This document shows, one piece after another, positions 27 to 53,833 of a stretch of 64,000 nucleotides of DNA; position 1 is the first letter of the stretch; the number at the start of each line of letters is the position of its first letter. Source of the stretch: Lepidodermella squamata (Eukaryota; Animalia; Gastrotricha). The stretch is from the NCBI GenBank assembly GCA_047495785.1, contig JBLDXI010000042.1, forward strand, positions 3,038,001 through 3,102,000, written 5' to 3'. The translations under genes were made by a program, and so were the position numbers. The notes beneath the pieces are model-generated. The model made no database searches. It was given only the letters and a program-made list of their open reading frames with translations, and was not told the origin of the DNA.

Positions 27-437
27 TCATAATACCAACTGGCTAAAATCGTTTTTCTTAACCCGACATCCAGCTGTCAGGAAAGTTTTCCGAGTAGCCA
101 TATGAGGCGATAGCAGCGCTGCTGTTAGGCTGCACTTCTTATTCGGCGCCTTAATTTGACTCGGAATCGTTCTGTTCTTGCGAAACCTATCGAAAGAAAT
201 CAGTTATTTATTGGAAAAAATTACAAAATTTTTATTATACCGTCGCCTTCGGTCGTTAGCTGACGCTGGAGGTCCGTTGTCCATGGGCGTTACAATATTC
301 ACAATATGGCATGGCATAGATTGGCGTCTGGTGAACGAATTGCGGCCATCGATGCTGCTGGCAGAGCCCGATGAATGAAGCTTGGCGAAAACGACAGCGT
401 CAATCACCCATTCGACCATCCGATTAAATAGAGGCAT
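27..437 (-). CDS. Orphan small-protein family, long member L1 (~118 aa; exons 437-241, 186-27)
   Basis: MPLFNRMVEWVIDAVVFAK...RRQSMP...RRR|RFRKNRTIP...SQLVL*. The 54-nt GT-AG phase-2 intron sits in the codon before FRK, as in paralogs L2 and L3. Confidence 0.75.
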
Positions 438-2262
438 AATACTTTTTCAAAATGAAATAAAATCTAATGAATGGCTGAGAATTACGATGAGCGTGTATTC
501 ACGCGCAATCTCGGGATAAAGTTTGATGGTAATTGACAAAAACAGGGCGCTGAACAAAATAAACCAAACATGACATATACGAGGGTCCGCGATGCGAGGA
601 TAACGCCCTGATATTGCATTTAGCCATGTACACTTAATGATCCACTTAGATGCACGTGAATGCAGGTTGGCTTGATAGTGAATTATGCCAAAAAATTAAT
701 ATGTACGCTCGAAAAGATATGTGCCGCAAAACAGGAAATAATTAAAGCTTCTCCTGAGGAAATTCGATGCTTGAGACGTTAGACACCTGTCCATAAAAAA
801 TACTATTTAGGGTACGGGCTTAGCAATAAAGGTACATGCCACGACGATGAGCCATAGCCATGCGATACGCATGTTGTTTTCAATAAGTATAACCAAGGCG
901 AAAAAACGCACGTGATTCTGCGATGTTGTATAGTGCCTCGTTTTAGCGTAAAACCGCTAGAAAATACTATGCGCTAATTTCTTTTTGGGTGCTGTCAAAA
1001 ACCACGCGGGTTTTTTTATTATAGTGACCTATATAAAGTACGAGGAAAAAATTAACTTTAATTATAGCGTGAGAAAATTAGTTGCAAATTTGACCGTTAA
1101 CAAGTGAAAAGTGGGGCTTGGCGAAAGTTTTAACATCGTGAGATATTGATGCCGCTTTGAAGATCAAAGAACATATCAAAGAGAAGCTCATCAGAGTTTC
1201 AGAGAAAATGGGCTTAAAAGTTTGCTAATTTAAAAAAAAATTGCGCTTGAAAAATCAAGTTTGTTTATTGCATCAATTAATAATTCGTCGCGCAATTAAT
1301 TCGGATGTTTTTTTCTTAATGCGCAGTCGAGATTTGTTGGGGTAATCTGAGGTGAGGAATCTAGGTAGATATTCCACAATTTTGATGGAATCACGCTAAT
1401 GCTTCTGCGTCAACCTGAACCGATAAGCCTTTTAGGCGAAACTTTGGGGTCTTCCAACTTTTGAGGTGGATGGGAGCTTCCCAGAGGTCTGAATTTTCGA
1501 AAATTCAAATTTCTCAAGTAAAGCTGTTTAATAACATCTAGGATTCCAAGAATCGTCCCTTATTCAAGTCAGGATACGGCGACAAAACAGCTGTTTCTGC
1601 TGTTATGTCGCGTTTGCTGTTTTGGGCATTTGCTGTTATGACGGTCTGCCCAAGTCAGTACACCTTTTGCCATTTGCTGAAAAATACAGAAAATACTCCA
1701 AACCCAACTTTTCACTTGGTAACGGTCATTTCGATTTTCCTTAACTGACGCATTCTGTGAATTTCGAATCCAATTTGCCGTGTGATTTTCAATTTAATAT
1801 ATAAATAACCAAGCTCAATCGATAAGTATGTGCGCTGTTCGCGATATCGGCTGGCAATATTCGAAGCCTGAAGAACCGAGAGACAATATCGATTTCGATT
1901 ATCGATTATTAGTGATTTTTCCGATATCCACAGTCTCGAAGCAAGCTTTTTCTTCACCTCTGAGGGTACCAGATTGCTTAGTAAGAATGTCCACAGATGG
2001 CAGATTGATAATTGATTAAATTGAAAAATTCAGTATAGCAGAAATTTTGTTCTACGACAGCTACGACACAACATCTTGTGATTTATGTGTGCGACATTAA
2101 TAGAAAAATTGAATCTCGATAACTTGGATAACCATTTTTCAGCGAATATCATAGGCAGCAATTAGGCTAATTGAATTATTGTCATCGCATAAGAAAATAG
2201 ACCAGGCACGACCTATTTTTATTCGTCTTTGTCCTGATCTTACATAGGTACTTATATAATGA

Positions 2263-2677
2263 CTAAACACTGTGTTCATCTACTAAATCAATAGATTCGC
2301 TGAATATTTGACGCCTGTACGCTTTCATCATTTTCGGGCTGAGGCCAACCTGCTGCAAATTCGGAGTCGAGTGAATTTTTTTCCGAAACCTAATTCAAAT
2401 TTATAAAAATTTCAATCGCGAATATTCGGAAAACAACTCACTTAGGCTGTCGCGACGTAGTCGGTGTGTAAGTTTTGTTTGAACTGGCAGCTACTGAACC
2501 TTTTGGCTCGGATTTCCTAGGCAGGGGCTCGGTCTCGCTGGGCCTGCTGGCGTTGTTATCAGACGAATTAGAACCATTTTCCGGCTGTGATTTGTTGTAC
2601 TTGGGAGCTTTAGCTAGAACGACAAGGTCAATAACAAGTTCGACCATTTTGCTGAAAAGTGTCCTCTTCCTTGTCAT
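2263..2677 (-). CDS. Orphan small-protein family, long member L2 (~120 aa; exons 2677-2442, 2389-2263)
   Basis: MTRKRTLFSKMVELVIDLVVLAK...RQP|KFRKKIHSTPNL...DEHSV*. 52-nt phase-2 intron (gtgagt...ttag) at the same position as in L1 and L3. Confidence 0.75.
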
Positions 2678-3396
2678 GTCAAATTGAAATAAGTAAATGA
2701 AAGAATGAATAAATAAGCTACATTTGAAATGAACATCGGCTCGCTAGATTAAATTTATATCCTGCATGTTTTTTTGCTAAAATTCCGTTCTTTGGGAATT
2801 ATGGCTTGATTAATTCTCAGATATTATACAATCAAAGCATTGTAAATAATACTTAGGTATACGTCAGAAAAAATCGCAATTCGAATCCAGCCTGTTATTT
2901 ATGAGATGCGATGTGCCATTGTGTCAGAATTTGGGACATTTGATTCCGCTATGCAATTTTCCTGAAATTTATTATTACAACAATTCATTGATCCAGGATA
3001 GCTCAACGCTGCGGGAAAATGTTCATTGTCGTAATTAAATTAAATTATTTGCATTTTTAGCGGCTTCTAAGATATGACCGATTTTTTCGAGTATTCATTA
3101 GTAAAATACGGGATTAAATGACCTGGCCTCCCTTTCGCGATTTCGCGGTAATTGAAGCTTGCCAGAAAAATATTTAATCCGGATAATAAAGGTATTCGAA
3201 ATCCCACGGATTACTTATCACTAACCGGTGCATCCTTTTCTAGATTTACTCTGCAGTAAAAATTCACGATTATAGACAGCCACGCGCGACATTAAATCTT
3301 AATTAATGAATCTCATTCTGTTCGATTACCCGACAAGTGCAATCGAGTTTTTTCGTCGCTTTTCTATCCTGATCAAAGCTATCATATTGTATCATC

Positions 3397-3770
3397 ATGC
3401 CTAAGGCAATATTTACCCTGTTGAACCGGATGGTGATGTTGTTGAAAGTCGACTCGAAATCATCATCGAAGCGGCGCAAATCAATGGCGCATGAAATAAT
3501 CGACGCGGCAAAGGAAGCCGAGGCCAGGGACATTGAAGCTAATACGGTTTATCACGCCCAGAGGTTTGTCAATTCTGCCGAATTTGATTTTTTCACCTGA
3601 ATTTTTCTGATTTTGTTTTTAGGTTTCGAAAAAGGTCCAACAATCGGAACAAGAAACTGCTGGCTCGTCGAGGCCGCTGTCGATCAATGAGCCTGCCTAC
3701 AGTCTTTGAACACATGACGGAAATAGAGGACGATATAATTGAGGGAGAATTCCAGCGAAAGAGCTGTTAA
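3397..3770 (+). CDS. Orphan small-protein family, long member L3 (~104 aa; exons 3397-3563, 3623-3770)
   Basis: MPKAIFTLLNRMVMLLK...HAQ|RFRKRSNN...RSMSLPTVFEHMTEIEDD...RKSC*. 59-nt phase-2 intron before FRK. The N-terminal helix is more diverged. Confidence 0.7.
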
Positions 3771-4007
3771 CATTGAGAAAAAAATCATTATCAAATTTCC
3801 TCGGCAGAAATTTTTTATTTCGTAATTTTGTGGATAAACCTTTGAAAGGTGGTTAACATTTTAATAAAAATTTAGTACCTATTTACTTCGATAATTTTAA
3901 TTTGAAACTTTGTATGGTAACTTTGTACTATATTGGCTGAAAAGCCTCCTGGTCGCCGATTTCAAATCAAATAATTCTCGGGGAGGAATATTTCTTGACA
4001 TAGGAAT

Positions 4008-4187
4008 CTTTGAACCTTTGAACCTTTGAACCTTTGAACCTTTGAACCTTTGAACCTTTGAAACTTTGGATCCTATCGAACTTCCGGAACCTCTGGACCT
4101 TTGGAACCTTTTGAACCTTCGAAACTTTGGATCCTATCGAACTTCCGGAACCTCTGGACCTTCGGAACCTTTTGAACCTTCGAAACC
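4008..4187. repeat. Tandem repeat: (CTTTGAAC)x6 plus a degenerate unit, followed by two copies of a ~61-bp derivative
   Basis: Directly visible periodicity. Confidence 0.9.
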
Positions 4188-5208
4188 TTTGGATGTTGGG
4201 ACCTCTATTTCTCCTAATTCGAATTGCTCTATACTCCGCTAATCGGTTTCAGATCTCGTTATGTTACACGCAAACATCTCTGAATTCAGGGACCTCAGGT
4301 AAGTACTATTTTCTCCAGCAGTTTATCGATGGCAGTATGAACTCAGTTTGTTTCGGCCAAGTTCCACTTTTACCTCGCCATTCTTTCGCCAAAAAAGCGG
4401 GATTCCTCCTCATTTTCAAACGAATCATCACTGTCGTTCCAGATTCCTGTGATGAAAAAGTCGTGTTTGTTTCTGTTATTATAAGGAATAAGGAAGGATC
4501 GCAGTGCACACTTGTAGTTCTTCATCGCCTCACAGTTATCGCACTACAATTCACGCATGTGACGAAGGTCGCACGTCACGGTTGTTTGCGCAGATCCAAG
4601 GAACAGGATAGCCACGTGAGCTACAAAAGCAATGCCAAGATCTAAATGTTAATTAAACGCCATCTATTTTGCGATGCTCAGTCCGTGTTTTTAATTCTGC
4701 TAAAAGTAAGAAATAATTGCCAGAAGTCTTACCTTCGGAATTGTCTCATTTCACCAGTTATATGTCCTTAAAATGGCCGCGTAATGAGCTGATGCGCAAT
4801 GTAAAAGTATTAAAACCTCGTGGGAATGTCGGGAGATGATGTCGGTTGCCCAATTACTCCTGCGCTCTTAGTCCGGGTTAATTGTGATTTATCTAGAGTA
4901 AGGACGTCCCCTGGCATGGAAAAACCGCAGCATATATATTTTTTTTATGATTTTTATGCCCATTCCAGTCAATCAATCCGGATAATTGTGTTGAATTCAC
5001 ATGTAATCAGCACTCTTATTCTCGCTACAGTACGATGAACCTGAGGTATTGATAGAAAAGCCCCGGTTGGCATAATTTGCGACAGACAATTAATGATGTC
5101 TGAATGTACGCGTAATACTAGGTAAAACATAGGCAAGGGAAGATGATATTTAAATTGCTGTAATATCTGTAATTAACACGAATATTTTCGCCATTGAGTC
5201 CTTATAAT

Positions 5209-5352
5209 ATGCCAGCAGCTTCTATTTTCAATGTTCTGATCGACTTGGTTATCGAGATCATTGTCTACGCCAAGAACATGCCTTACTCGATAACGCTGAA
5301 TACGGGAATCTCGAAAAAGCCTTCACATTGCCCATTCAAACCTTCAACTTGA
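5209..5352 (+). CDS. Microprotein S1 (47 aa), orphan family
   Basis: MPAASIFNVLIDLVIEIIVYAKNMPYSITLNTGISKKPSHCPFKPST*. ATG and stop are aligned with S3-S5; AATAAA lies downstream. Confidence 0.7.
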   Translation: MPAASIFNVLIDLVIEIIVYAKNMPYSITLNTGISKKPSHCPFKPST

Positions 5353-6267
5353 AACGAAGCTGCGCTTTGATAGTTCTGCTGGTGTTCAGAATTATTGCTG
5401 CCATAACATATTCACGCCCGTAGTTTTTTGTGAATAAAAAACGATCATTTTATAGCGAATTGGGTGCTCTAAGTCCTGTTACGGAGTCAGTGCAGAGGTC
5501 GGGGGTTGAGCGGCAGGTAAATTGACCGGTTGCCGGTTGGGTATGGGTCCGCTAAATTCTGGCCGGTTGACTTGTAAACTGAAATTTTCGACGGAAATAG
5601 CAGAAATTGACACGCGGCAGTGGGACTCTCCTAAAAAAGGTTCTGCAACCCCGGAATTCGTCATTTTTATGATTCTGTTCTAGAGGCTGCTCACACCTTG
5701 TGCGGGTTTTACCTACCAACCGGAACCCGTCCTGCGTGATAAATTAAAAGTTATTCTTGAAGGAGATTTTCAGTCCAGATTCCAATAATATTGATTACAT
5801 TAATTTTTCGAAATTGTGTGAAAATTTCGCAAAATGAGAAAGAAATTCCCGCAAACTGTCGGAAACGAGTCGGGAAGATATTTCATATAGACATTTACTC
5901 GAGCTGATATAATTCAATTGAAAAGAACATATTATAAAAGCTGCTTTTACGATTTATATACAGCCTGTCATTGTCATCCATATAATTGTGTAGCCATGGA
6001 CCAAAATTAAATCAGCACCCGCCGTCCTTGATCATGAGGCGTAATATAGGACGCCGCGGCCTCGAAACACCCATTATACATTTCCTCGAAACAAATAATT
6101 AGCAAAAAGACAGCAATGCATCATCAAGTTTAACTTTGTACCTCAATAAAAAAATCACATTTCGTCTAATTTTCTGCGAAACGCTCTGCGTCCTATACTA
6201 AGTCTCATGTCCTTAGCCAAGCAGGCGCTTAATTCTAGGGTTGGAACTTCATTTTTAGTGGTGGAAA

Positions 6268-6380
6268 TATCTTTTGATCGGCTTGGTTTTCGAGATTATT
6301 GTCTACACCAAGAACATGCCTCACTCGAAAACGCTGGAGAGAATGTCGAAAAAGCCATCACATGGAAAACTTCAACTTAA
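6268..6380 (+). pseudogene. Decayed microprotein copy S2
   Basis: LLIGLVFEIIVYTKNMPHSKTLERMSKKPSH in the family frame. No in-frame family ATG, and the terminal KTST* is in another frame. Confidence 0.65.
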
Positions 6381-6856
6381 AACGAAACCGCGCTTTCTAT
6401 TTTCCTATTCTATCAATCCAGCTGTTCCGTTGTTATTTTTGTCGAAATCTTATACGTTTTTACGTCTTCGTGCCCATGCATCGGGGCGAACATAATATGC
6501 CATATATTCCAATTATGGCGTTCATTAAATTATATCGAAATGTCGGAAAATGAGAAAACGTCGCAAAAAGGTCGCTTTGCGAACACGTGTCCGGTTGTGT
6601 GAGGGAGGTACTATCTGTAGACCGTTTATACTCAAACGCTCTTAGTACAAGTTTCAAAAATAATTTTGGTTTGACAACCTGAAAATGTGCGTTTTAGAAT
6701 AGCCTGCAGCTGCTTTATCATCTGAACCGTCGAACAGAACATTTGCAAAAATAGATTGCCTTATGCTTATGCTAAGCTGTCATCCGGATAATTTAAGGGC
6801 GAATAATGAACCCAAATGAATAACCAACACCCGTTTATGACATGTAGGAGCTATAA

Positions 6857-6972
6857 CTGATAGAAATTCCATCGGTCGGCATCACCTTTGAAGGACAGCT
6901 AATGATTTGTGGCTGAATGTACGGGTTTACGGGTTGTACAACAAACAGGTCGGGGAAGACGATATATAAACT
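6857..6972 (+). promoter_or_regulatory. Conserved upstream block of the microprotein genes (TGATAGAAA..CCATCGGT motif and GGGAAGAC-ATATATAAA TATA-like box)
   Basis: Homologous blocks lie upstream of S1 (~5049-5155), S4 (~22135-22245, minus) and, in part, S5 (~25145-25165, minus). Confidence 0.5.
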
Positions 6973-7038
6973 GAAATAAATTTGCTATAATTAAGAATCA
7001 CATTATTTCTCTTAAATTGCGAGTCCTGAATCTTTAGG

Positions 7039-7191
7039 ATGCCAGCCTCTGCTTTCAACCGTTTCATCGACTTGGTTATCGATGTCATTGTCTACGCTAA
7101 GAACATGCCTTATTTGAAAGCATTGCGAAGATTGTCGAAAAAATCTGTCGATATTAGCTCAGATCGTCCTTGCAGGCGGGCTTCAACCTAA
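7039..7191 (+). CDS. Microprotein S3 (50 aa), orphan family
   Basis: MPASAFNRFIDLVIDVIVYAKNMPYLKALRRLSKKSVDISSDRPCRRAST*. Confidence 0.8.
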   Translation: MPASAFNRFIDLVIDVIVYAKNMPYLKALRRLSKKSVDISSDRPCRRAST

Positions 7192-7319
7192 CGACGTGAC
7201 GTTTCATCTTCATCTCAGCTTATCAATTAAATCCTGCTGGTGATCAGAATAATTGCAGCTATATGAGCTGCAGATAATTTCAACGTTACACTTATTGCAA
7301 ATAAAATGGTCATTTTATA

Positions 7320-7616
7320 GGGACTACTCCAAAACGGCCAAGACAAAACAAAAGACGCCAAAAAGAATGCACCAAAACACCCAAATTTCTAAAAACGTCA
7401 AAACAGGCAAAAAAATAAACAAATGATACCAGAACCGCCAAAGTTAAAATTAGCGTTTAACAATGGTTTTTTACTGTTTTTTACTGATATTTATCGAAAA
7501 AACCATGTGCGCGCGTCACATTGCCTTAATTATCAAGTTTTTGGCCTCATTTTTTATGGCGTCTTTTGTTTTGACGTACTTGGCTGTTTTGGTGTCATTT
7601 GTTTTGGAGTAGTCCC
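7320..7616. mobile_element. Mutator-like MITE with 9-bp TSD
   Basis: TIR GGGACTACTCCAAAAC / GTTTTGGAGTAGTCCC; TSD CATTTTATA at 7311-7319 and 7617-7625. The paralogous empty site (cattttatag) is seen downstream of S1 near 5446. Confidence 0.9.
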
Positions 7617-9372
7617 CATTTTATAGTAACCTGAGATTGTTTCGGGTGGGTACAATCAGAGTAACCGTAATCAAAGGGTAAAATAGGACTGCAGTAGTGC
7701 CAAGTTGCCATTTTAACCAAATAATGTTAAGCCTCGCGAGCTGATATATCGTATTTTTTTAGCATTTTACCAGTTATCGATTTCAAGCGATAAGTGATTG
7801 ATTTTGTAAATATCGATTGGATAATAAGGCTTTAACAAATTTTTTAAGTAAAAAATGAGGAAAGATACAATCAAGATGGGAAAAAGCAGTGTTATAGACT
7901 TCTTCCATTGCGCTGAAGTCGGTAAATTATCGAATAATCGAATGATCACCAAAATCGATAATTGATCGAATTCGAACATCGGCGCTAATTCGGCGAGGGC
8001 CGCACCCACTTGCCAAAAGTTCCCTAAAAGTTCCATATGATTGTCATTGCTGCAATCAAATATGGTAGAGACCGCACAACCATGCCATAAACCGAGTCGA
8101 TTTTTGACACAAATCTCTTGCGATTCTGTCAATTATCGAAAATATATGACACGAGCTATGGTGAGCACCATGAAGAATTAACCATCGCCTTACATGTCAA
8201 AGTACTCGCCGCAGCTTGCTAGAGCTTATTCTTAGATTAAAGACCTGTTTAAGATGTAAATTTGGATTAAAAAATGAAAATATCCCATTTTAACATGATT
8301 TTAACTGGTGTGCCAAACATTTTGCTCGGATACTGTACTTACTCGATTGGTTTTAATCTTTGATTAATTTCTTCTTTCGAAGCCATTACAGCCACCATGG
8401 CTTCCACGTGCAGCTTGCATGGGTAAGTTTTCTATTATTTTTGTGAATTTTTCGCATTACATTTTGGGTTAAAAGTTGGGTTGCTGATCATGTCATCAAT
8501 ATAAAGAAAAATTAATGGTATCCACGCAGTAATCAGCGCGTGGTCTCGCCGTTCTATTTCCTCTTACAATTCTTAGGTAATTTTAAGTACGTCTGCGGAA
8601 ATGGGGTTAGCGGCTGAAAGCAGGGCACGGCGTTTAATAATCACTATCAGGTGACAAATTCCAGGTTCAAAAATGTCACTATAGCTGTGAGTGGATTTAC
8701 GTCAATCATCGCCGCGGTGAACTGGATGGAATTCAGGTGGATATCAATGTGACATAGACGCATAAAAGTCCGATTGCAAAACTATTTAAAGTTTGGCGCA
8801 CGGTCCTTATCGTCGAAATCTTAAGTTGTTTTGATGATCGATTTTATGCTCCAATTTGAACGCAACCGGGCGTGAAAGACAAATTTCTGCAATAAATTTT
8901 CGATGACATTAAAGCAGAACTTGGGTTTACGAACGTCTGCTCTTCAATTCGACATGGTTTTATTTGCCTAATTTTATTAGAGAAGGTAATAAAGCATAAT
9001 CCATGGTGATATCATACAAGATTTGAGGGCAAAGATTGCAGACTTTCTGACCTATTAACTTGGTATAATGAGTCATCAAACAATGAAGCAAAATAATGAC
9101 AGGTGCGCGTCCGAAAATTGCTAGAGCGTGTAATAGGCTTAATTAACCTCGAAGATAGGCCCTCGGAACTGAGACATCTAACATTTTTTGATCACTTAAA
9201 TGAAGCTAAAGTATTCTTGCTAATGAACACATAGATCCAGAGCACGAACATAAATTCCAAGTACCAAATTTCGCATTAAAATTGCGTGAAAAAGTGAATC
9301 AATATCGAAGACAAGAAAATGCTGATATTTTCAGTTTTATTTCATTCAAATTATTATCACAATTTTTCAAAT

Positions 9373-11478
9373 TCAATCATCGTCTGAAGATCCCATCGGA
9401 AAAACCGCCGACGGTATTCGCCGAGCCCCGGCTTTGATCGGTGACCACAACAAAATCCCAATCAAAGCGTTCGAAATCACAAGAGAAACTCCGCTAACCG
9501 TTGCTATGAAATCGGCCTGATTTAAAGCTCGAAACGAACACGCCGCAAAACTGGCCCCGAATGAGTATAAAACAGTCGCGGCAAACGCAGCAGTTCGAAC
9601 AAGGTCAATGTCCTTAGTCGCAAAGTGGCCGATTCTCTTCGAAATAGTCTGCATTGTTACAACAGAACCGATAAGTAAAACTAGCCAGTGAATCGAGACT
9701 AGAACTGAAATAAAAATTTCTCCCGATGTCGACTCGCAGATTTTCTCGTAAATTTCCCGCTGGGTATCAAGAACTTTGTCGTAGAAAATTTCCGAAAATT
9801 TTTCCGATTTTACTGGCAAACTTAACGAAGAATACCAAGCGCCGAAAATAGCTCCATTCAGTACGGTGATTGAAGCCTGCCCGGCTATAGTCAGCTTTTC
9901 CTTACGTTCGTAAGAAATTTGAGCCAAAGTCCTAGCTAGTCGTGATGATCGGCGCCTGTGTCTACTTCTCCGCCGACCAGGGGGTGGATGCGGAGGTGGG
10001 TTGACAACCTTCCCATGGGCATCGAAGCTTTTCTCAACGATTTTAACCTCATGTTTGTACAGCGCCATTCTGAACAACAAGAAGCCGCCTAATAGGGACA
10101 TTCCGATCGCGATGAAAATCGGGTAAATTGGGCAGAAAATCAGGTCCAAATACCATTCGGCAGTTGGTGACCCGGCAAAACCCGATTGAAATAAAAAACT
10201 CGAAATCGCCGCTAAATCAAGAAAAATCGCGCCTAAAACGCTTAGCGACTTGCTGTACGGTAGTGAAACAGCTATTTTCGGGTTATTTCGGTCAGTGATC
10301 AGGTAGAAAATAATTCCGATTTTGAACAAGCATAACGAGCCGCTGATTATTAGGGCGGCCGTGAAGCTTTGCCGAGACATGTAAATGAAGCTGGAATCGA
10401 TGTTTAGCGGTTCCGATGGCGGTAAGGTCACGCAATAATTAATCGAGCAATTAACACGAGGTCGCGTTTGATTGAACGCCCTCAAATTCGGCAATGTGGT
10501 CACCCTGCGAAATTGCGCCTCTTGCCAGCCAATAATCAAATTTTCGTCCATATCATTCGAATGATTTTCTAGGCTTGACTTAACCAAAGTCGAATTGCCA
10601 GCGCTAGATTGAATGGCTAAGGATGTCCGATAAACTGCGGCTTGCAAATGTAGGTCACCGTAACGTTTTTCACCCGTGAAATTTGAGAATTTTGAAAATC
10701 GGTCAAAATTAAATCGCCCAATCCATAAAACAGATTTTAGTTGTTCGGCAAGCATTTTTCGGGAGCAATAACTCGGAATTTCCGGGTAGCTCGGGTCGAG
10801 CCCAGCTTCGGGTCGCGCGATAAATAAATACCGTGACCCGGTAATACCCGATCGGTAAGTCGCGCACAAAAACGTCGCAAATGCCGCTCGGCTTGAAATT
10901 TCAATTAAAATTATTCTAGCGTCAGATATTGCGAGAGATTTCACCAGATTTCTCTCCTCGTCCTCCGCAACTCCAAGCCAAGCTAGCGTGACATTCCCGG
11001 CAATTAACATAGCAGTCGCCAGTCGGGTATTACCATTTGAAAGGTCCGAAGTGGTTGTTAAAATTCCGATTTTTTCGAATTTCGCCATAAAAGCGATGAA
11101 GTAAGCTCTTTGGTTGATTGAACTGCGAGAATTCGATCTCATAACATTGTCCGACTCCACATTTACCGGGTCCATTCCTAATTGATTGAAGAAAATTTGA
11201 TCGATGTTTGATATTGTCGGGGAAACCGTAATAATTCCGCCATTGGAGCCGGTGATTTTTCTCGAAAATTCGACAATATTTTGCGGTGAGCAAATCGCCA
11301 TTGATTCGTCGCCGAAACCGTCGAATTGGCTCAGCTGGTGGTTGATTGTCGAGCATTTATCGGCGTCGACGTGGGGCAGTAAAAAAATTACGCTCAGTTC
11401 AGTGATCATCGCCTCGTTTTTGTCGGTTATGAATGAAATGACAGTAATCAAGCTGATAGCAAGCCATGACTTTAGCAT
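9373..11478 (-). CDS. Divergent GABA-B-like class C GPCR (signal peptide, shortened Venus-flytrap domain, 7TM), intronless
   Basis: SDARIILI and FLCATYRSGITGSRYLFI match GABA-B VFT motifs; IAVSLPYSKSLSVLGAIF resembles GABA-B ICL1/TM2; seven hydrophobic segments. First ATG at 11478. Confidence 0.8.
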   Translation of the reverse strand: MLKSWLAISLITVISFITDKNEAMITELSVIFLLPHVDADKCSTINHQLSQFDGFGDESMAICSPQNIVEFSRKITGSNGGIITVSPTISNIDQIFFNQLGMDPVNVESDNVMRSNSRSSINQRAYFIAFMAKFEKIGILTTTSDLSNGNTRLATAMLIAGNVTLAWLGVAEDEERNLVKSLAISDARIILIEISSRAAFATFLCATYRSGITGSRYLFIARPEAGLDPSYPEIPSYCSRKMLAEQLKSVLWIGRFNFDRFSKFSNFTGEKRYGDLHLQAAVYRTSLAIQSSAGNSTLVKSSLENHSNDMDENLIIGWQEAQFRRVTTLPNLRAFNQTRPRVNCSINYCVTLPPSEPLNIDSSFIYMSRQSFTAALIISGSLCLFKIGIIFYLITDRNNPKIAVSLPYSKSLSVLGAIFLDLAAISSFLFQSGFAGSPTAEWYLDLIFCPIYPIFIAIGMSLLGGFLLFRMALYKHEVKIVEKSFDAHGKVVNPPPHPPPGRRRSRHRRRSSRLARTLAQISYERKEKLTIAGQASITVLNGAIFGAWYSSLSLPVKSEKFSEIFYDKVLDTQREIYEKICESTSGEIFISVLVSIHWLVLLIGSVVTMQTISKRIGHFATKDIDLVRTAAFAATVLYSFGASFAACSFRALNQADFIATVSGVSLVISNALIGILLWSPIKAGARRIPSAVFPMGSSDDD

Positions 11479-13207
11479 GTTATTTAGCAATTGAAATGCG
11501 AAACTGTTGTTCTAGAGAGATTTACTTTGAATTGAATATTTAAGAAATGTGTACCTTATAACTTGCGTCTTTGGAGAAGATAATCATAAGAAAATGCCGG
11601 GGTGACAGGCGTAATCTTTACCTGCTTCGCACCACAAGATCGATTTTCAGACACTTTTTGCATCTTTGCCGCCAAGGTAATTGGCAAGTGCACTTTGCCA
11701 CGCTAGACGCCCCATAGGTAATTACAGGTAGGGTGTATCATTTTCCACCAATTATTATCACCAAATTTTGCGATAATTAAGCAAAATTTGATTAAGAATA
11801 GCTATACGGTTTTAAAATATCGCCAACAAACGGGGAGAGAAATGTTTAAAAATAGAACTATAGTGGGATTTCATATCAAAAATAGTTAAAATTCTCGCGC
11901 CATAGTTTGGCGTGAATTCAGACTGCTTATAAAAGGAACAATCCATAAAAATGTGTCATTTAATATTTTTCTAAAAACTTTCTAATTTCAAAATTTTCTA
12001 AAACTTTTTGTAAGCATATCTCTTATAGGTAGTGCACCACGTTTTTTTAACAAAATTGTTTTTCAAATAATTGTCATGTTCTTGTTCTCTAATTAGGTAT
12101 CTAATAATAATCATAGGTGGGCATTATTCGGAAAATCGCAGAAAAACTGCAGAATTGTATGAATTGTATGATAATTTGAAAAATGGGCCCAGCACTTAAT
12201 TTTTCAGATTCTTTACGATTTCGGCGTTTTCGTTTTTTGGTCGATACTGATGCCCTCCCTGAACCTAGAATTTTGTATTTCAGCTATATTTGGCGCTCTA
12301 AGCTACGTAGAAAAATTATCGATGTTGGGTTTCAAGACGGCTGATATCGGAAAAATCACCGATTTGTAAAAACGATACTTGGAATCGATATCGGCTCTGC
12401 AAGCTAAGTATTACTCGTAAACTGACCGCTTATAGCTTATAAACTACGCGTAATATGAAGATCTATCAGTTAGGCCTGATAACAAAATATTTAGATTCTA
12501 GTGAGGGCATAAAACTCGAAAAACAAAGTGGAAATATAGCGCTGGAATCTCAAAATTAATGCTGGAACCATAAATTTAGGGTGCGCACTTGCCAGATCCT
12601 TGAAAAATGCAAATTGGCAGATGAAATTTTCATCTTTTGGCTCAGCTTTCACTTTTGGTTTCAAATTTTGTTTCGCTAAAATTGTATATGTAATGTCCCA
12701 AATTAAAACGCGGCAAATTCCTGTAGTTAATTTTACACCTTCCGCCACCTCGAAAAGTTCTTCAAAGTCTACTCAGAGTAAACAAGCCCCATACCGCAGT
12801 TACGCCGACTATCGCGATATAGCATGCGTTATCAATTGCGATAATCACATGTCCCGACCGGATGCAGGCGCGGCGAGGATTAAAACCGACATCGGTAGCA
12901 AGAACGGCGGTTCCGGTAAAAATTACCACGCGCGCGCGCGGCGCCGCCTTAAAACTTCAAAGGCCGCACACATGTTACCGCGTTTATGGTACACGATAGC
13001 GATGTCCCGTTATCAGCTAAAAATAGCAGCCGGCACCTAAATTCCGCATCTTTGCTACCAGTCCTAGCTTTAAAGAATTGAAGTTATTAATGAATAGGCG
13101 ATTCATTTATTTCCTTACGACCTGGTTTTGGCGCGCGCAGGCATGTTTTTTTTCCTTTCGAATTTCTTCTCATCACTATTATCAGTCATAAAAAAAATTA
13201 CGTTATA

Positions 13208-15343
13208 CACTTTTCTATCGTGCACATTGGGCATTATTATATAGTGTGCACGACGGCCGTGCACGATGAAAATGTCAGTCTCACTTTTGTCAGGCTTTAA
13301 AAATCATTTCGGTCGATTTTAAAAATAACCGGGCAGAATAAAACGGTTAAATTTTATATCAGCATTATCGGGCTAAGGAGGTCTATGTAATGGATCAGAT
13401 CATTTATTTACAATTTGTCGCGTTTAAAATTTAGCTGTGCACGACGGATCTTGCACGACCTAGTAAGGACCAGTAATTAAATCGCCGATAATTACCGCGC
13501 CCGTACTCAAACATATATAATATAGGGAATAGTGCGCGCACCTTGATTGAGGTTATTAGCGCGCGCGGGACGCTGTACTCAAACATGAAACCGTATTTAT
13601 TACCTTATAAATCGGTAAAATCAGAAATAATATTTCTTGTTTTGAGATTTTAATTTTAATTTTTATTGGACGCGCCTCCTTCGTCGGCGCGAGCGCGCTA
13701 TTTTAATTTCTACCAACTGACCCATCCTTCTCATTTCTACATTTTTGATCTATAGCCATCAAGGCCGAGAAGCGTCCAATTGGGTCTGGTTTGTTGCTAC
13801 TAAAATCGGGAAAATCAGACAAAATATTATTACCTTATTTCTTGTAATTTTTGTTTAATTTTTTGTGGACGCGCCTCCTTCGTCGGCGCGAGTAATATTT
13901 TTAAATAATTATTGGGAGCGCTCAGCGCATTGTTCTTGCGTATTTGCGGTTTCATTTTAACTCTTTAATTCAATCTGGGACACGCTCCCTGCGGTCGCGT
14001 GTTCGTTTTAAATTGGGTCATTTATTTTCTCTCGTGGCTACCTCATTTTTTAATCTGGTTTATTTATTGTCTTCAGGGCCATTGCTTGATAATTATAATT
14101 GAGATAATAGGTAAAATCAGGAATAATTTTTTTTACTGGACGCGCCCCCCTGCGGTCGGCGCGCATCCCTGTTTTTTAGGGTCATTTATTGTCTCTTTGG
14201 CCGCAAAGAAGCGCGTGCGCAATAATAGTGACCTGGGTCATTTATAATTGTGTCAGGTCAATTATCGGAGCGCGCCTCCCTTCGGTCGGCGCGCACGTGC
14301 CATCTTCTGGGTTTCGGTTTTTTACCGGGTTAGGAATGTGACCCAGGTCATGAAATTATTACGGGAGCGCGCCTCCCTTTGGTCGGCGCGCATATGCCTT
14401 TATACAGGGCTTGAGATTTTATTACAGGTAATGGAATGTGACCTGGGTCACGTTTTTTGGCAGGGCCGGGCGGACGCGGCAGGGGTCTCATTAATTTTAC
14501 GCGGCAGCCCTATGGAATCCTAGTGGGCTGCCGCTGCGGCTGTCGTGATCAACAAAAAAGGGTGTTTTCCTCTATTTTCGGAAAAAGTTGAAATTTTCAA
14601 AAAATCGTAGAAAATCAACGGTTTATGACAGGGCAATTTGGAAATCAGATTCCAAGAGACAATTTGCGACTGAATATGGAAAAAATTAGCAAGACGTAAG
14701 CACACCTCCACAGCGAATAAGCGACAGGTCTATTGATGTCTTATCAAATGAAAAATGGGTGTTATTTTCAATAATTGTAATTTTCATATATATTTAAATA
14801 AATTTAACCAGAATCAAATGGACGCTTCTCGGCCTTGATGACTATAGATCAAAAGTGTAGAAAGAGAAGGATGGGTCAGAAAGGCATCCTAGTTATCTAT
14901 TTTTTTCGTAATTTGGAATTTGCATATTTTACGGCTATTTATAATGGCCTTGTTCCTTCGGTCAATCTCTACAAATTTGAAATGAAATGATGAAAAATAG
15001 GTGAACAAATTTCTCTGGCGCCTTGACCTATATTTCGGAATACGCGCGCACTCAGGTAATTAGCGTGGCCGACTATATTATTGCTGTTAATTATGGGCTG
15101 AATTTTATATAATTTTTATCTCGCTGATTTTTCACTCGATTTTCATCGGGTAAAATTTGTTAGTCTCCGCTTGGCGAATATTATGTGGCTGCAAATTTTC
15201 AATTTTTTTAAATTAAAATTGTGAGAATTATAGCGTTTTGAAATTTTAAAGTACTGGCATGTGTGAATGACCTAGTGCGTGTGCACGATGGCCTGGTAAC
15301 AGTCGTGCACACTAATATTAGGCACTGTGCACGAAAAAAAGTG
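13208..15343. mobile_element. Nested non-autonomous inverted-repeat elements with an internal GC-hairpin array
   Basis: Outer imperfect IR 13208-13260 / 15298-15343 (CGTGCAC motifs); inner ~75-bp IR 13717-13792 / 14805-14879; about six GCGCGCC..TTCG/TGCG..GGCGCG hairpins. Confidence 0.65.
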
Positions 15344-15511
15344 CGCTTGCATCATTGTGTACTAAACGCATAGATAAGTAAAAAATGATGACTAAACGCG
15401 CATCAGTTATTGGGTCTTCGTCGTTAAAAAAATCGCGCCGATTCTCTAAGGAAATTTATTACCAATAACTGGAATAATTATTGCTTTTTCATAGATTTTT
15501 AATAAATTACT

Positions 15512-16132
15512 ATGCATCGCCATTTTCCGACCGATAGCGCGTCAAACAAGCGATTCCGTTCGAATGAAAACATCGAGAATAACGCTGAAATTTCGGCGAT
15601 GAGTACTCCGTCGAAATTTATGACCCTTGCGCAACTCTACCTGCCAGTTAGCCGCATCGCAAGCCCTGATGACCCGGTTCAATTTGATTACTACGAAGAC
15701 GCGACTAATAATAGCAACGACCGAGACCAGTTCGAGCAGTGTCAAATCAGTTTTCCTGAGATAGAAAGCGAGGAGGATGAAGCTGAAGAAAAGCGCGCGA
15801 GTGTGATTTGCTGCCATTTCTGCTCGACTGGTTTCGCTACGCCTGAACAGCTTCACCGTCACGAAGTTGCCGAGCATTCAGCTACGAATTTCAGTTTTAC
15901 TTCAAGCGAGTCGGCGAATAATTCTTCGATAAATTCGACGATTAATTCGACGACGACGGCGGCGGGTAAATTCAACTGCCCGGCGTGTTGCGGCGATTTT
16001 AGCGCCACGTCAGAGTTTTTGCGGCACCTGGTTGTTGCGCACCCTGAGACGCGCCAGTTTCCGTGCCCGGTTTGCTGGCAGACCCAGTCGACGCTGTTCA
16101 ACATGTACTGCCACGCGTTGTTGCACTATTGA
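15512..16132 (+). CDS. C2H2 zinc-finger protein (3 fingers, 206 aa)
   Basis: CHFC..HEVAEH, CPAC..HLVVAH, CPVC..HALLH; GC-rich coding bias. Confidence 0.85.
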   Translation: MHRHFPTDSASNKRFRSNENIENNAEISAMSTPSKFMTLAQLYLPVSRIASPDDPVQFDYYEDATNNSNDRDQFEQCQISFPEIESEEDEAEEKRASVICCHFCSTGFATPEQLHRHEVAEHSATNFSFTSSESANNSSINSTINSTTTAAGKFNCPACCGDFSATSEFLRHLVVAHPETRQFPCPVCWQTQSTLFNMYCHALLHY

Positions 16133-16549
16133 CGCGGCCCGCGACCAAATCCTTGCTGGTGAATATGTGTGAATTTGTGAAAATTATTGCTCAATGATGA
16201 TTCGCTCCAACTTCCTTTCCTTCCCATTTTATGTACTTTACGTGCCGTGTAAATACGTAATAGATATACATCGCTCAACAATAAAGCTGACAGTTGATCA
16301 ATTATTCTGCATTTTTCTAGAATCTTTCCAACAAATTCACCATGAAAAGGGCATAGGAAAAGGTTACGCGTCCAAAAATGACCTAGAAAATGATAAAAAA
16401 AATCCTAAATTGAGAGGGCAATACAATCAGGGTTTCACCGCTACATTTTCACTGATTGTGGCTATTCGAATTTTAAATTTTCATGTTAGTCAATAGGTGT
16501 CAATATTATTCGTGTTTTACGCTGTCGGCCATCATTTTACGAGTTATAC

Positions 16550-16665
16550 AGAGCCTGCAGAGCCGATATCGATTCCAAGTATCGATTTTACAAATCTGTG
16601 ATTTTTCCGATATTGAAATTCCAATAAGCCAATATAGAAAGTGTTACTGCCAAGCTGATGGTACT
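16550..16665. repeat. Dispersed repeat family (GAGCCGATATCGATT...GTGATTTTTCCGATAT)
   Basis: Related copies near 1860-1930, 12340-12405 (reverse), 33483-33640 and 41945-42005 (reverse). Confidence 0.7.
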
Positions 16666-16763
16666 AGGTAGCTCTTATAAAAACCAGGATCTTGTGAGGC
16701 ATCAGTATGCGAAAATCGAGAAACAATCGGGAAAGGAAGCTATTTAGTGCCGAAGCCTCAATC

Positions 16764-17140
16764 GGGTCCCCCACAGAGCAGCAGGCTTTAAAGCAGGGAA
16801 AACGCACTAAACAGTCCTCTCAGCAGGCGCTCAGGCTTAGCCTCTGATTTTCAACCAATCGACTAACATGATGGTCAGCTATTCTAGCTTTTCACACTAA
16901 AAATTGAGGAACATAAGTCATCAAAACTCCGTAATGTGACTCAGACCTCACTTTGGTCGAAAAAGTCGTTTTTCGAAATTTTTTCAAAATTCATAAGCCG
17001 TACTACTAAAGTCATGATGAGTCCATATTCAGAAAACTACGCCGAATTTTATCGTAATTAATTCGATTTATTGTTGCGTGGCGTTTGCACCGCTTTTTGA
17101 GTTTATCCTGCTTTGAAGCCTGCTGCTCTGTAGGGGACCC
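16764..17140. mobile_element. MITE with ~40-bp TIRs and 8-bp TSD
   Basis: GGGTCCCCCACAGAGCAGCAGGCTT / AAGCCTGCTGCTCTGTAGGGGACCC; TSD CCTCAATC at 16756-16763 and 17141-17148. Confidence 0.9.
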
Positions 17141-18719
17141 CCTCAATCGTTTGCTCGTCTCAAATATCAAATCTCAAATCTCAGCGACGTGATCCTATTT
17201 TAAAATTCGGATAGAAAAATGAAACCATAATAAAATATTTCCAATAATTCCAATTAGGTTCAATTATGTATTTCAGTTTTCGAGTCAAATAATGTTCACT
17301 TTCTAGGCTTTCCCGATTTAACCATGAATTTTCAAATTACTTATGAAAAATATTACATCCTTATAATATCATGGCTTATTTATTTCAAAAACTTTCAAAC
17401 TCTGCACCATTTTATTATTTGCACGTTAGAATTATTTCAAATTGCAGGGTGTCAATCAGGTGACATTGTAGAGCAATATTTTGATGATTCAACATTAAGG
17501 CGGAATTGTCAGGCCGAAATTTTGCAGCACGCCAGGCTGATGCAATCCTGCGAATCAGTTGTCTGTATGGACGGATGTGACGCGTTGCAGCTGGTGTTGC
17601 AGTAGCTTAGTAGTGAGAAAGAGAGGTTCCGCTTGTTCGGCTGATTTTTTAAAAGTCTTTTCAATGCAGTGAGAAGAGCACGTGCTGCACCACTGGCCAC
17701 CACAAACAGCATATCGTTGTTTTTGCTGCTAGTTTCATTTACTCGATTATGTTTGAACATTCTCAGCAAAGATAAATATGATGTACGATGCACGAACAGC
17801 ATGACAATTTCTTGAAAATCTCCCTTCCTTTGAGAATTCACGTCATTTTAACCTAACTAGAGGTTTCTTTCACTATCAATTATCAATTGTAAGGTTAAGA
17901 AAAGTCAATAATATACTGTCCTTATAGTTCTTCCTTAATTTTTATTGAAAATCTCTTGAGGTTTCCTAGCAAGGCTTCGCGCAAGGCGTCCGGTTAATTC
18001 AATCAGAATGAGGTTTCCTATAGCTGATAGGTAAGGAACCAGGAACCCGAATAAGATTTGCAAATCTTGAATCAACTTCATCTATTCGGAATTTCAGGTA
18101 GGCTTGAGATAGTTATAACTTGGGGTAGTTTAAAAGGCTTTTGAAAACTTGACCTGATTTCGCGGACACTAATATGTACCCTTGTAATTCTGCTGCAATA
18201 TTAGAATTATAATCCACCCGAAAATTGTCTAACGTATTTACCCTATAATAATAGTAGCATGAAGTGGATCTTTTTCAAAGGGTTCAACAATTTATTTCTA
18301 ATGAAATTAGTTGCTGAAAATAAAGATAATCTTGCAGAATCCTAATTTTCTGTCATGCATGCCATGTCCTTAAAATTGCCCCTTTAAATTTTTTTTGGTA
18401 GGAAAGGATAGGTCAAGGCTAGCCATTGGTCGATAATATGTCAATAATTTGGAAAAAATGACTTTAAATTGAGAAATATGCTATGCCTATTTGGCCTGAT
18501 TTTTCGCTTCTTTTTAATACATTCAATAGATATTTTTTGTCGGATTTCAACAAAAAATAATGTTATTGTTAGATCAGTGTCAAGCGGGGTTGAAGTACGT
18601 AATATAAATAGCTCTCGCTTAGTCACCCTTTCTTATACACAGATAAAAATGACGAATTATTAAAGCCAGTGCAAAACCGACTAACTATTCCGCCTATTTT
18701 TAGGCTAGTTTTTTGCAAA

Positions 18720-21700: not shown

Positions 21701-23825
21701 ATATTATTAATAATATCGACATTGCGCTGAAAATTTGAAAAAATCGAAGCTCACAAAGTTGGGAAAACACACCATATGAGCCGCAAAATATTACAGGTTC
21801 TTGTAAAAATGCAATTTTATTTACGAACCAATTTATGAACATTTTTATGGAATTGAAACTTATGGTTGCAATTATTCAAACCACCAGCAGGATTTTTATA
21901 ATCGATAAGTCGATAAGCGCGTTGTTACGTTGAAGTTCTGCAAGAGCGATCGGAACTATCCACAGACTTTTTCGACCATCTTCGCATCGTTTTTGAATAA
22001 GGCATGTTCTTGGTGAAGACAATAACATCGATAACCAAGTCGATGAAACGGTTGAAAATAGATGCTGACATTTTGAGGATTCAGAAATGATAATTTTCAA
22101 GATTGAAGATTATTTAATATAGCCCTTACAGCAATTGATATATTGTCTTCCCGGACCTATTTAGTATCACCCGTAATACCTTCAGCTGTCAATAACTAGT
22201 TATCCGTCACAAATTTTGCCCTACCGATGGATTTTCTATCAGTAGCTTTTACCGCACTATAATAGCAACCAGGGGTTTTAATTGCATTAGGGTCATTAAA
22301 TAATAAAATTCAAAATGACAACCATCGACATAAAAATCATCATAGTTTGTGGAAATATTTTGTGGGGGAGGAATTGGATCATGAAGCTGCTGGCTATACT
22401 CAAGCCACAATTTGATAACCACGTATCATGACAGCGCTTGAGTAATTGGTCAAACGGTAGCATTGTGACATAATTAATGTATTGGATATGGATGTATCCT
22501 CAATTTTTTGTCGTTTCGTTATATTAAAGAACAACATGATGGAAATAGGCATATCTCGCCTACTTTTGGGCCAATTAAATCTACTACAAAAATAGCAATT
22601 TGTATCGCACTACGTAGGACGGGTTCCGGTCGGCAGGGGAAAGCCGCACAAGGTGTGAACTGACCGAAACTAGTTTCAATGATTAAATCGAGGGAAAGTA
22701 AGCATTAAGAGAGCGCTAGGATGTCCAGGGGTGCTGCTAGATTATTTTCAAAATTTGGCACTCAGCACTAGGAAGTACCGCCAACTGGAATGACTCAGTG
22801 TGGTCATAGCGTGTCCCAAAAGTTGCGCAACTATTTTTTAATTTGGCAACTTTTTGCAGGAAATTCAACTAATTTGTTCAAATTTAACCTAACGAGAGAA
22901 AATTTCTACTTTTATCCGCAATTTAACCGAAGAAATGAAAAATTTACCGGGTAAAATCGGGAAAACCCCGATGGTAACTAGTTCGGTATTTTTCGGTATT
23001 TAACCAAATTTCTCCGGACTTTTTAAATCCCATTAAAAAGTGGCACACTTGATTACTGTTCTCGGGTTTTTTTTAATTAAAAAAAAATTTCTGGCCATGA
23101 GAAACTTCGTCTCTGATATTGGAGTTTCTGAACCCGTTTCCGTGTATTTCCTTTACTTCCTTTACTTATGGGACATCGTGTATGAATGGACTACCGTTGA
23201 ATAGCCCAGGGAAAGGCCAACCTGGACGTGAAAAACACAACCTTTTTAATACAACCTATTTAGGGATAGCAGGTAAATTTTTGAGGAAATTTCGATAAAT
23301 GTATATTTTTATTAAAACTTCGATGAATGCCCAACCGAAGCCGTCTAATCGAACTTCGAATCATAAGCCATTTTCAGATTGCCCTTCCTCCAGGCTATCC
23401 AACGGTACCCCACTCATAGTGTCTCAACGTTAGCATCTTTTCGTTTTTTGAACATTGAACATCGAACATTGCCATAGTCACAATAATTCTGGCAAATAAA
23501 TTTCTACCGATCAACTTGCCAGCCATGATTTCATCGCCAATAAATTATTTCTTATTTAATTTAGTTGCGTAGCAAGTCATATAAACCACAATCAAGTAAG
23601 CCGGATCAGCAGTGGCAGCTACAGCGAGTTGATAGCCGGCGGTTCATGTGTAACTTCTGCGCCAACACGTTTTACGCCTCACTCGACGAACTGCTGATGC
23701 ATTTCAAAATCATCCACTCGAGAAATTTCAACGAAGAACAACTTGCCAACTTCAAGCTCCTCTTTAAAATCGCTGATCGTAGTGACAAGTTAAATCATCT
23801 TGGTATCGAAGAATTCGGACTTTAA
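18720..23825 (+). CDS. C2H2 zinc-finger protein; exon 1 18720-19352, probable last exon 23565-23825
   Basis: Exon 1 has CQFC..HERKMH and CSRC..H..C fingers and ends TAC|gttagt (phase 0). Position 23565 follows a ttaatttag acceptor in phase 0 and encodes CNFC..HFKIIH. The joining of the two exons is inferred. Confidence 0.65.
19757..19810. repeat. Short degenerate (CCCTAA)n telomere-like tract
   Basis: ccctaaccctaaacctaaccctaaccctaaccctgacttctaaccctaaaccc. Confidence 0.8.
19820..20100. mobile_element. Partial copy of the ~370-bp CAGCGTGTCCCA-TIR MITE family
   Basis: Shares CCCCGATGGTAACTGGTTCGG...CTGGCCATGAGA...TATGGGACACGC with 22807-23180, 34699-35010 and 38870-39135. Confidence 0.75.
21925..22071 (-). 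CDS. Microprotein S4 (48 aa), orphan family
   Basis: MSASIFNRFIDLVIDVIVFTKNMPYSKTMRRWSKKSVDSSDRSCRTST*. Confidence 0.8.
   Translation of the reverse strand: MSASIFNRFIDLVIDVIVFTKNMPYSKTMRRWSKKSVDSSDRSCRTST
22807..23180. mobile_element. Full-length Tc1/mariner-like MITE (CAGCGTGTCCCA TIR family)
   Basis: Ends tagcgtgtcccaaaagt and acttatgggacatcgtg|ta; four copies in the window. Confidence 0.75.
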
Positions 23826-24839: not shown

Positions 24840-24986
24840 TCAAGTTGCAGTCCTGCATAAACGATCGGAACTATCGGCAGAATTATTCGACCATCTTCGC
24901 AGCGTTTTTAAATAAGGCAAGTTCTTGGCGTAGACAATGATATCGATCACCAAGTTGATGAAACGATTGAAAACAGAAGCCGGCAT
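24840..24986 (-). CDS. Microprotein S5 (48 aa), orphan family
   Basis: MPASVFNRFINLVIDIIVYAKNLPYLKTLRRWSNNSADSSDRLCRTAT*. Confidence 0.8.
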   Translation of the reverse strand: MPASVFNRFINLVIDIIVYAKNLPYLKTLRRWSNNSADSSDRLCRTAT

Positions 24987-53440: not shown

Positions 53441-53833
53441 AAATCAAGGTTACTTTTCCAGAGTAAAGCTGAGCAGAATATTCCCCAGTGCCTAAAATGG
53501 ATTGCGAATCCTCATCCGCGAGAAATTTTCTGAACAGAGACGTCTAAAACTATGAATTTGTAGAAAGCTAACTGCTAGACAAAAAATTGCGCTCGGTTTC
53601 TGCCTTGATAGGCTGCCTCAGTTATGCTAATGCCGGAATATGTGCTAAATTATATGAAAAAGTGGCATGACTTGCTGGCGAAACTTTTAGTGTAATACTC
53701 ATTACACAACATGCACACACGAACAGCACGAGGCGTCACTCGCCCAGTTATAATACTTATAGTAGCCTTAACATGCCATAGTTCTTACCATCCTTTCTGC
53801 TTCATATTGAAGTTGTTTAAGTGATTGGAGAGG

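Follow-up and report, generated by a model that had tools for sequence, protein, structure and literature searches.

A tandem family of very small protein genes lies in a stretch of 64,000 nucleotides of the genome of the gastrotrich Lepidodermella squamata (GenBank assembly GCA_047495785.1, contig JBLDXI010000042.1, positions 3,038,001 to 3,102,000 of the forward strand), referred to below as the window. A profile of the exon-1 peptide detects eight family loci in the 121-Mb assembly, all between window positions 27 and 24986. Three are two-exon genes (L1, L2 and L3) that occupy the first 3.8 kb of the window, four are intact single-exon microprotein genes (M1-M4) and one is degenerate. The members share an N-terminal amphipathic helix. 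The tail of L3 carries in addition a candidate docking motif for the B56 subunit of protein phosphatase 2A (PP2A), which a complex model seats in the canonical pocket of the animal's own B56.

Gene structures and the wider family

L1 and L2 are read from the minus strand and L3 from the plus strand. Exon 1 of L1 (241..437; 65 codons plus 2 bases) codes for the helix at about 372..431 and for RRQSMP at 312..329; an intron of 54 nt (187..240, GT..AG, phase 2) separates it from exon 2 (27..186), which supplies the last base of an Arg codon, the tripeptide Phe-Arg-Lys (FRK), 52 residues and a stop. L2 consists of an exon 1 of 78 codons plus 2 bases (2442..2677), with the helix at residues 7-23 coded at about 2609..2659, a 52-nt phase-2 intron (2390..2441, GTGAGT..AG) and an exon 2 (2263..2389) coding for FRK and 38 residues, with SESIDLVDEHSV at the end, before the stop. 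In L3, exon 1 (3397..3563; 55 codons plus 2 bases) codes for a diverged N-terminal helix and RRKS and, after a 59-nt phase-2 intron (3564..3622, GT..AG), exon 2 (3623..3770) contributes FRK, basic patches, RSMSLP (3681..3698), LPTVFE (3693..3710), an acidic tail and a stop. The original prediction, made from the sequence of this DNA, had placed a phase-2 intron before an (R/K)FRK motif in all three genes, and its coordinates are correct. All the motifs that it named are also present, namely RSMSLP and LPTVFE with its acidic tail in L3, RRQSMP in L1 and HSTPNL in L2.

The codon split by the intron is CG/G (Arg) in L1, AA/G (Lys) in L2 and AG/G (Arg) in L3, followed each time by TTT CGN AAR (Phe-Arg-Lys). 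Since the Arg and Lys codons vary in their third position among the three genes, it is the peptide that is conserved and selected, not the DNA. A scan of the whole window for the AG/G-Phe-Arg-Lys pattern returns the acceptors of L1-L3 and two matches inside a minisatellite, and no others. The minisatellite, located just past L3 at 4010-4200, begins with CCTTTGAA units, after which a unit of ~61 nt (GGATCCTATCGAACTTCCGGAACCTCTGGACC...) is present twice; both spurious matches are on its minus strand.

The data support the view that L1-L3 are paralogues with a common intron position. The accompanying statement that their proteins are otherwise unalignable was too strong, given a common N-terminal helix and a weak gap-free block near the C-terminus. 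All members follow the N-terminal consensus F-N/S-R/K-h-h-D/E-h-V-I-D-h-h-V-h-A-K, which is weaker in L3. The stretch LFxxMVExVIDxVVxAK is common to L1 and L2, and L3 again matches it more weakly.

The remaining loci follow downstream of L3. On the plus strand, M4 (5209..5352) is a single exon of 47 aa that has the helix, lacks an RRxS motif and ends in K-P-S-T; the degenerate copy (6271..6357, E = 4.5e-5) has no in-frame ATG ahead of a helix remnant and is probably a pseudogene; and M1 (7039..7191) is a single exon of 50 aa with the helix, RRLS and a C-terminal RRAST. M2 (21925..22071) and M3 (24840..24986) are single exons of 48 aa on the minus strand. Exon 2 exists in only three copies in the assembly, those of L1, L2 and L3. 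It had been proposed that the microproteins derive from exon 1 of a larger gene. The homology of the microproteins to exon 1 of the larger genes bears out the relationship. A second exon was sought behind the microprotein genes, and neither a donor nor an FRK remnant was found downstream. The microproteins may descend from exon 1, or exon 2 may have been added later.

A search for promoter words common to the L and M genes found none. The regions upstream of M1-M3 (6839-7038, 22072-22271 and 24987-25186) have blocks in common that are missing from L1-L3: CTGATAGAAA..CATCGGT, with a GATA-type core inside, at about -165, then GTACGGG, a AGGTCCGGGAAGAC-like block and a TATA box ~75 nt before the ATG.

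Searches for relatives were uniformly negative. Against Pfam-A, none of the six exon peptides of L1-L3 gives a match over the gathering score, the best being HEAT_ATR with 13.6 bits for a cut-off of 27. Neither L2 exon 1 nor a six-member alignment brought up a relative in a word-index protein search, and a profile hidden Markov model run over 1.84 billion representative proteins gave 0 matches at E <= 0.001, the 52-position profile having limited reach. A scan of metagenome contigs with a four-member alignment produced 214 pattern matches and no relative; in exact-protein look-ups neither M1 nor M3 is on record; and a feature search of the ESM Atlas with M1 reached a best score of 0.87, with recognition under the useful level and no lead. 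Judged from these comparisons, close orthologues are absent from the searched collections, and distant ones could escape so short a profile. The family itself is new: a set of tandem-duplicated, very small proteins without detected relatives.

Elsewhere in the window, four tandem open reading frames (ORFs) at 45897-47216, 53825-54757, 58644-59540 and 61100-62422 code, in one long exon each, for a Fringe-like glycosyltransferase domain (E ~1e-17 to 1e-18). An ORF of 359 aa at 36510-37589 has a weak match to the MULE transposase (24 bits, under the cut-off of 27.6), and a minus-strand ORF of 705 aa at 9373-11490 has no Pfam match at E <= 0.001.

Coverage, haplotypes and selection

Two public runs include the stretch: X1 (2015), whose type is guessed to be RNA, and X2, a DNA run that is probably the source of the assembly. 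X1 has depth in bins 1-520, 2211-2730 and 3381-3770 (L3 exon 1 being covered by those at 3381-3640) and zero depth in the unique intergenic bins 521-1040, 1821-2210, 2731-3380 and 3771-3900. Its contig pieces sit on predicted exons (241-312, 283-463, 2227-2388, 2444-2539, 2562-2704 and 3631-3763), and the edges at 241, 2388 and 2444 are predicted exon borders. The piece over L2 exon 2 (2227-2388) shows no mismatch. None of the listed X1 contigs lies inside the L2 intron: pieces stop at 2388 and resume at 2444. Such a pattern is what a transcriptome would give, and X1 is probably RNA. As to the junctions that were predicted for RNA (241/186, 2442/2389 and 3563/3623), the piece ends at 241, 2388 and 2444 agree with them, and no junction-spanning piece occurs among the joints listed. 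X1 also covers a high-copy repeat (1041-1820) that separates L1 from L2, where the summed contig depth of X2 rises from ~115 to 1,000-20,000 with many rearranged joints; the copies of this repeat are likely small mobile elements of one family.

X2 reveals a second haplotype. In the exons of L1 it carries single-nucleotide polymorphisms (SNPs) at 165, 186 and 345, all three synonymous, and in the 54-nt intron of the same gene five SNPs and a 1-nt deletion, as against two synonymous SNPs in the exon sequence that flanks this intron. In L2 exon 1 a net deletion of 3 nt at 2544-2547 is in frame. Selection can also be read from the microprotein genes. Among M1-M3, the ratio of non-synonymous to synonymous substitution rates (dN/dS) is 0.20-0.38, with a synonymous excess at binomial p = 0.001-0.03, and ORF identity is 83-84% versus 46-69% in the 200-nt flanks. 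The proportion of non-synonymous differences (pN) is 0.07-0.12 in the helix versus 0.14-0.18 in the remaining protein; the tails are under purifying selection too, their pN being well below the synonymous proportion (pS). Because X1 coverage, synonymous SNPs, the in-frame indel and dN/dS among M1-M3 all point the same way, the family genes are regarded as coding and under purifying selection.

N-terminal helix and tail motifs

The N-terminal amphipathic helix is the most widely shared feature of the family and had been overlooked in the original prediction, as had the RRxS motif that follows it. AlphaFold2, run with small family alignments, places the helix at residues 3-22 of M1 (predicted local distance difference test, pLDDT, 81-89) and at residues 7-23 of L2 exon 1 (pLDDT 84-95). 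The helix is hydrophobic except for a thin polar strip, with a mean hydrophobicity of 0.15-0.53 and a helical moment of 0.31-0.52 on the Eisenberg scale. Because it contains a pair of acidic residues spaced by one turn, it is not a transmembrane segment; it might rest on the surface of a membrane or lipid, or associate with a partner or with itself. Beyond the helix, M1 and L2 exon 1 score under 70 in every ten-residue block and mostly under 60, the remainder of L2 exon 1 being below 60. This low confidence, together with a pLDDT of 44-49 for the L3 exon-2 peptide in the complex model described below, is consistent with the disorder that had been proposed.

Three more specific assignments of the helix were considered. 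The RII-binding helix of AKAPs follows the pattern [AVLISE]xx[AVLIF][AVLI]xx[AVLI][AVLIF]xx[AVLISE]. Compared with it by eye, the family helix has a fitting 3-4 spacing, fails at its end positions (Phe and Lys) and shows a face bulkier than that of AKAPs. A SUMO-interaction motif (VIDxVV) was not adopted, being a mere pattern match, nor was a nuclear export signal, which any hydrophobic helix would fit.

The second most widespread feature of the family is an RRxS motif of the basophilic-kinase type, located 8-16 residues past the helix in five of the seven intact members (RRQS in L1, RRKS in L3, RRLS in M1 and RRWS in M2 and M3); L2 and M4 are without it at that place. Depending on the sequence, it is present in 3-11% of shuffles. 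The phospho-dependent motifs of the prediction are more restricted. L3 alone matches the strict 14-3-3 pattern R[SFYW]xSxP (with RSMSLP; 0.2% of shuffles of its exon 2 match), and the loose R..S.P pattern is present in L1 as well (RRQSMP, 8% of shuffles; range for the loose pattern 0.02-0.08). The L2 peptide HSTPNL fits neither form. The ELM pattern DOC_PP2A_B56_1 (L..[IVLWC].E or [LMFYWIC]..I.E) is matched by LPTVFE of L3, at exon-2 residues 24-29, with no match in L1, L2 or M1-M4. In the form given, the motifs are not conserved among the three paralogues, the strict B56 and RSxSxP patterns each being confined to L3 and HSTPNL conforming to neither.

The best three-way 11-mer of the second exons is a gap-free block, SLTAALLSPHM in L1, SESIDLVDEHS in L2 and SMSLPTVFEHM in L3, and is at most suggestive as a sequence likeness. 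In the L3 tail RRGRCR stands ahead of LPTVFE, acidic residues follow it and serines are adjacent; RCRSMS also fits RxRxxS. The C-terminal ends of the microproteins have R-x(1-2)-S/T near the C-terminus (C-R-R-A-S-T in M1 at 7174-7188, C-R-T-S-T in M2 at 21928-21942 and C-R-T-A-T in M3 at 24843-24857), which resembles the C-terminal (mode 3) 14-3-3 pattern. The genome holds an intact, intronless 14-3-3 gene. Binding of any family member to 14-3-3 seems quite unlikely. Mutually exclusive binding of 14-3-3 and B56 to L3, suggested in the original prediction, would follow from nothing other than the overlap of two patterns.

Docking of L3 to PP2A-B56 and rival explanations

The first 410 codons of the animal's B56 gene form one open frame, which matches human B56-alpha at E = 7e-175. 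Residues 85-410 were modelled with the 48-residue exon-2 peptide of L3 in three runs, together with three controls. The B56-L3 pair scores 0.85 in every run, against 0.00 for the best control; the 0.85 mark is attained by 51 of 78 solved complexes and by 2 of 108 mismatched pairs. Agreement between the runs amounts to at least 42% of contacts. Confident contacts involve, on the peptide side, exon-2 residues 23-31 and 33 (S-LPTVFE-HM) and, on the B56 side, K232, T233, H236, Y239, G240, L243, G244, R246, E275, I276, G278, S279, I280, N282, G283, F284 and A285. With the numbering offset of +49 between this B56 and human B56-gamma, established through a conserved LHRIYGKFLGLR stretch, ten of these contacts (T233, H236, Y239, R246, E275, I276, S279, I280, G283 and A285) correspond to B56-gamma T184, H187, Y190, R197, E226, I227, S230, I231, G234 and A236. 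In B56-gamma these residues line the pockets for Leu and Ile and make the main-chain contacts with the LxxIxE peptide of BubR1, and the H187A or R197A mutation abolishes binding (PMC4930772). A basic patch up to ~15 residues N-terminal of LxxIxE raises affinity, as in KIF4A, NHS (RCR), AIM1 and RepoMan, and acts by touching an acidic patch on B56 (PMC7108865). By alignment, the positions equivalent to E335 and D338 of the B56-alpha acidic patch are Glu and Glu in the animal's B56. The predicted docking gains support in silico, for L3 only, from the seating of LPTVFE in the canonical LxxIxE pocket; L1 and L2 lack the ELM pattern. Actual binding of the L3 tail to B56 is given somewhat less than an even chance.

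The best explanation overall, given a probability of roughly 0.55, is a lineage-restricted tandem family of helix-bearing micro-proteins, of which L3 docks PP2A-B56 through its tail. The core of each protein is an amphipathic N-terminal helix of ~18-20 residues, with RRxS in five of the seven intact members and a presumably disordered remainder. In L1-L3 a second exon, joined through the phase-2 intron at a homologous position, adds a basic FRK cluster and then a loosely conserved S-x-S/T-h-x-x-h-x-E/P-H block. In L3 this block conforms to the canonical LxxIxE motif (LPTVFE) between an upstream basic patch and downstream acidic residues, and would dock the B56 subunit. The role proposed for the helix is to bring the protein to a membrane, lipid surface or partner protein, and phosphorylation of neighbouring serines would tune binding.

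Several points weigh against this explanation. The complex test has no calibration for peptides or disordered chains, and its pass may reflect memory of solved B56-LxxIxE complexes, i.e. the motif class, not this copy. Val at the fourth position of LxxIxE is weaker than Ile. Searches, folds and the complex model all used single-exon peptides, not whole spliced proteins, and orthologues sought for motif conservation by Pfam, word, profile and metagenome searches were not found. The ELM B56 pattern is present only in L3, and ~10% of shuffles of its exon 2 contain a match; with hundreds of motif classes and ten peptides, single motif matches read from sequence are not remarkable. The C-terminal 11-mer block is not significant alone, its score being equalled in 17 of 300 shuffles. 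As to expression, the RNA nature of X1 is only a guess, and the listed joints include no piece across a junction. In one X1 contig the end of L1 exon 1 (241-312, with 241 as its precise edge) is linked through 6 other letters to part of L1 exon 2 (68-132) in inverted orientation, an arrangement that fits no splice model; an inverted repeat that could account for it was sought in the DNA and none was found, and the contig may be an assembly chimera.

In a simpler account, only the helix functions, by binding a membrane, lipid or partner, and the kinase, 14-3-3 and B56 motifs are chance occurrences in basic Ser-rich tails. The helix is indeed the sole feature found in all eight loci, and in M1-M3 its pN is below that of the rest. 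The motifs belong to single members and are not rare by shuffling (0.10 for B56, 0.02-0.08 for loose 14-3-3), the C-terminal block lacks significance, and M4 keeps an intact ORF without RRxS. However, chance does not readily explain why it is precisely LPTVFE that the complex model seats in the canonical pocket, the controls scoring 0.00, why the L3 motif is accompanied by the two known enhancers (a basic patch ahead of it and an acidic run behind), why RRxS is found at a similar place in L1, L3 and M1-M3 although these are deeply diverged, or why the tails of M1-M3 are under purifying selection as well. This account is rather unlikely, though a real contender. The recurrence of RRxS has another possible meaning: the members could serve a basophilic AGC kinase, for instance PKA, as substrates or as regulators resembling substrates. 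Their layout would be like that of the heat-stable inhibitor PKI, in which a short helix is followed by RRx(S/A) and then by shuttling signals, and the B56 motif would be secondary in L3. Besides RRxS after the helix in five of seven intact members, the fit of RCRSMS in L3 to RxRxxS speaks for it and, in our own reading, so do the fit of the helix to the loose export spacing h-xxx-h-xx-h-x-h and the likeness of the FRK clusters to nuclear import signals. The likeness to PKI, however, is one of architecture only, neither Pfam nor the profile search having linked the sequences to a known family. RRxS is also present in 3-11% of shuffles and missing from the corresponding place in L2 and M4, and by our own check the helix misses the published AKAP pattern for RII binding. 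A kinase-centred role is improbable.

Least probable is that the loci are non-coding, i.e. chance ORFs, pseudogenes or non-coding transcripts. Their very short ORFs, the lack of a homologue in the searched collections and one visibly degenerate locus would suit such a view. Against it stand exonic SNPs that are synonymous only, an in-frame indel in an exon of L2, an indel-bearing intron in L1, dN/dS of 0.20-0.38, an intron phase and flanking peptide kept across very diverged copies, and exon-restricted coverage in X1, the probable RNA run. The preferred explanation, a helix-bearing family with an L3 tail that docks PP2A-B56, also has a more ambitious extension. The proteins could be young lineage-specific micro-adaptors in which the helix targets and exon 2 (gained by the L genes or lost by the M genes) recruits PP2A-B56, switchable by phosphorylation and 14-3-3 capture, while M1-M4 compete at the helix target. 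Taken as a whole this extension is doubtful; if true, it would describe a home-grown phosphatase-targeting system with built-in antagonists.

The significance of the family depends on the behaviour of the L3 tail. LxxIxE-like motifs are thought to arise easily in disordered sequence, and an orphan protein with motif-less paralogues is useful for following the birth of phosphatase clients or regulators. If the tail binds B56, the family offers a natural series from helix only, through helix plus degenerate block, to helix plus canonical motif, in a barely studied animal group. If it does not, a well-supported orphan microprotein family remains.

If functional, the L3 motif is a further member of the well-known LxxIxE class of PP2A-B56 interactors, which includes BubR1, KIF4A, NHS, AIM1 and RepoMan (PMC4930772, PMC7108865). 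L3 has the same kind of core (L-x-x-V-x-E) in a presumably disordered stretch, its RRGRCR compares with the RCR patch of NHS within 15 residues before the core, and the model seats it on B56 pocket residues equivalent to those that hold the BubR1 peptide in the crystal. Unlike these proteins, it is a 104-aa orphan with an N-terminal helix, has Val instead of Ile and shows no relationship to them beyond the motif, and L1 and L2 do not match. A similar balance holds for mode 1 ligands of 14-3-3 (RSxpSxP). RSMSLP of L3 is an exact match and RRQSMP of L1 an R-x-x-S-x-P match, both in basic contexts suiting basophilic kinases; on the other hand, the two putative sites lie in non-homologous exons, L2 has no match and the likeness is one of pattern. 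MicroProteins of the Id and LITTLE ZIPPER types are small relatives with a single module that act as competitors of the larger proteins of their families. M1-M4 are alike in that they retain only the helix and RRxS part of the L proteins (in M4, the helix without RRxS) and lie in the same gene cluster.

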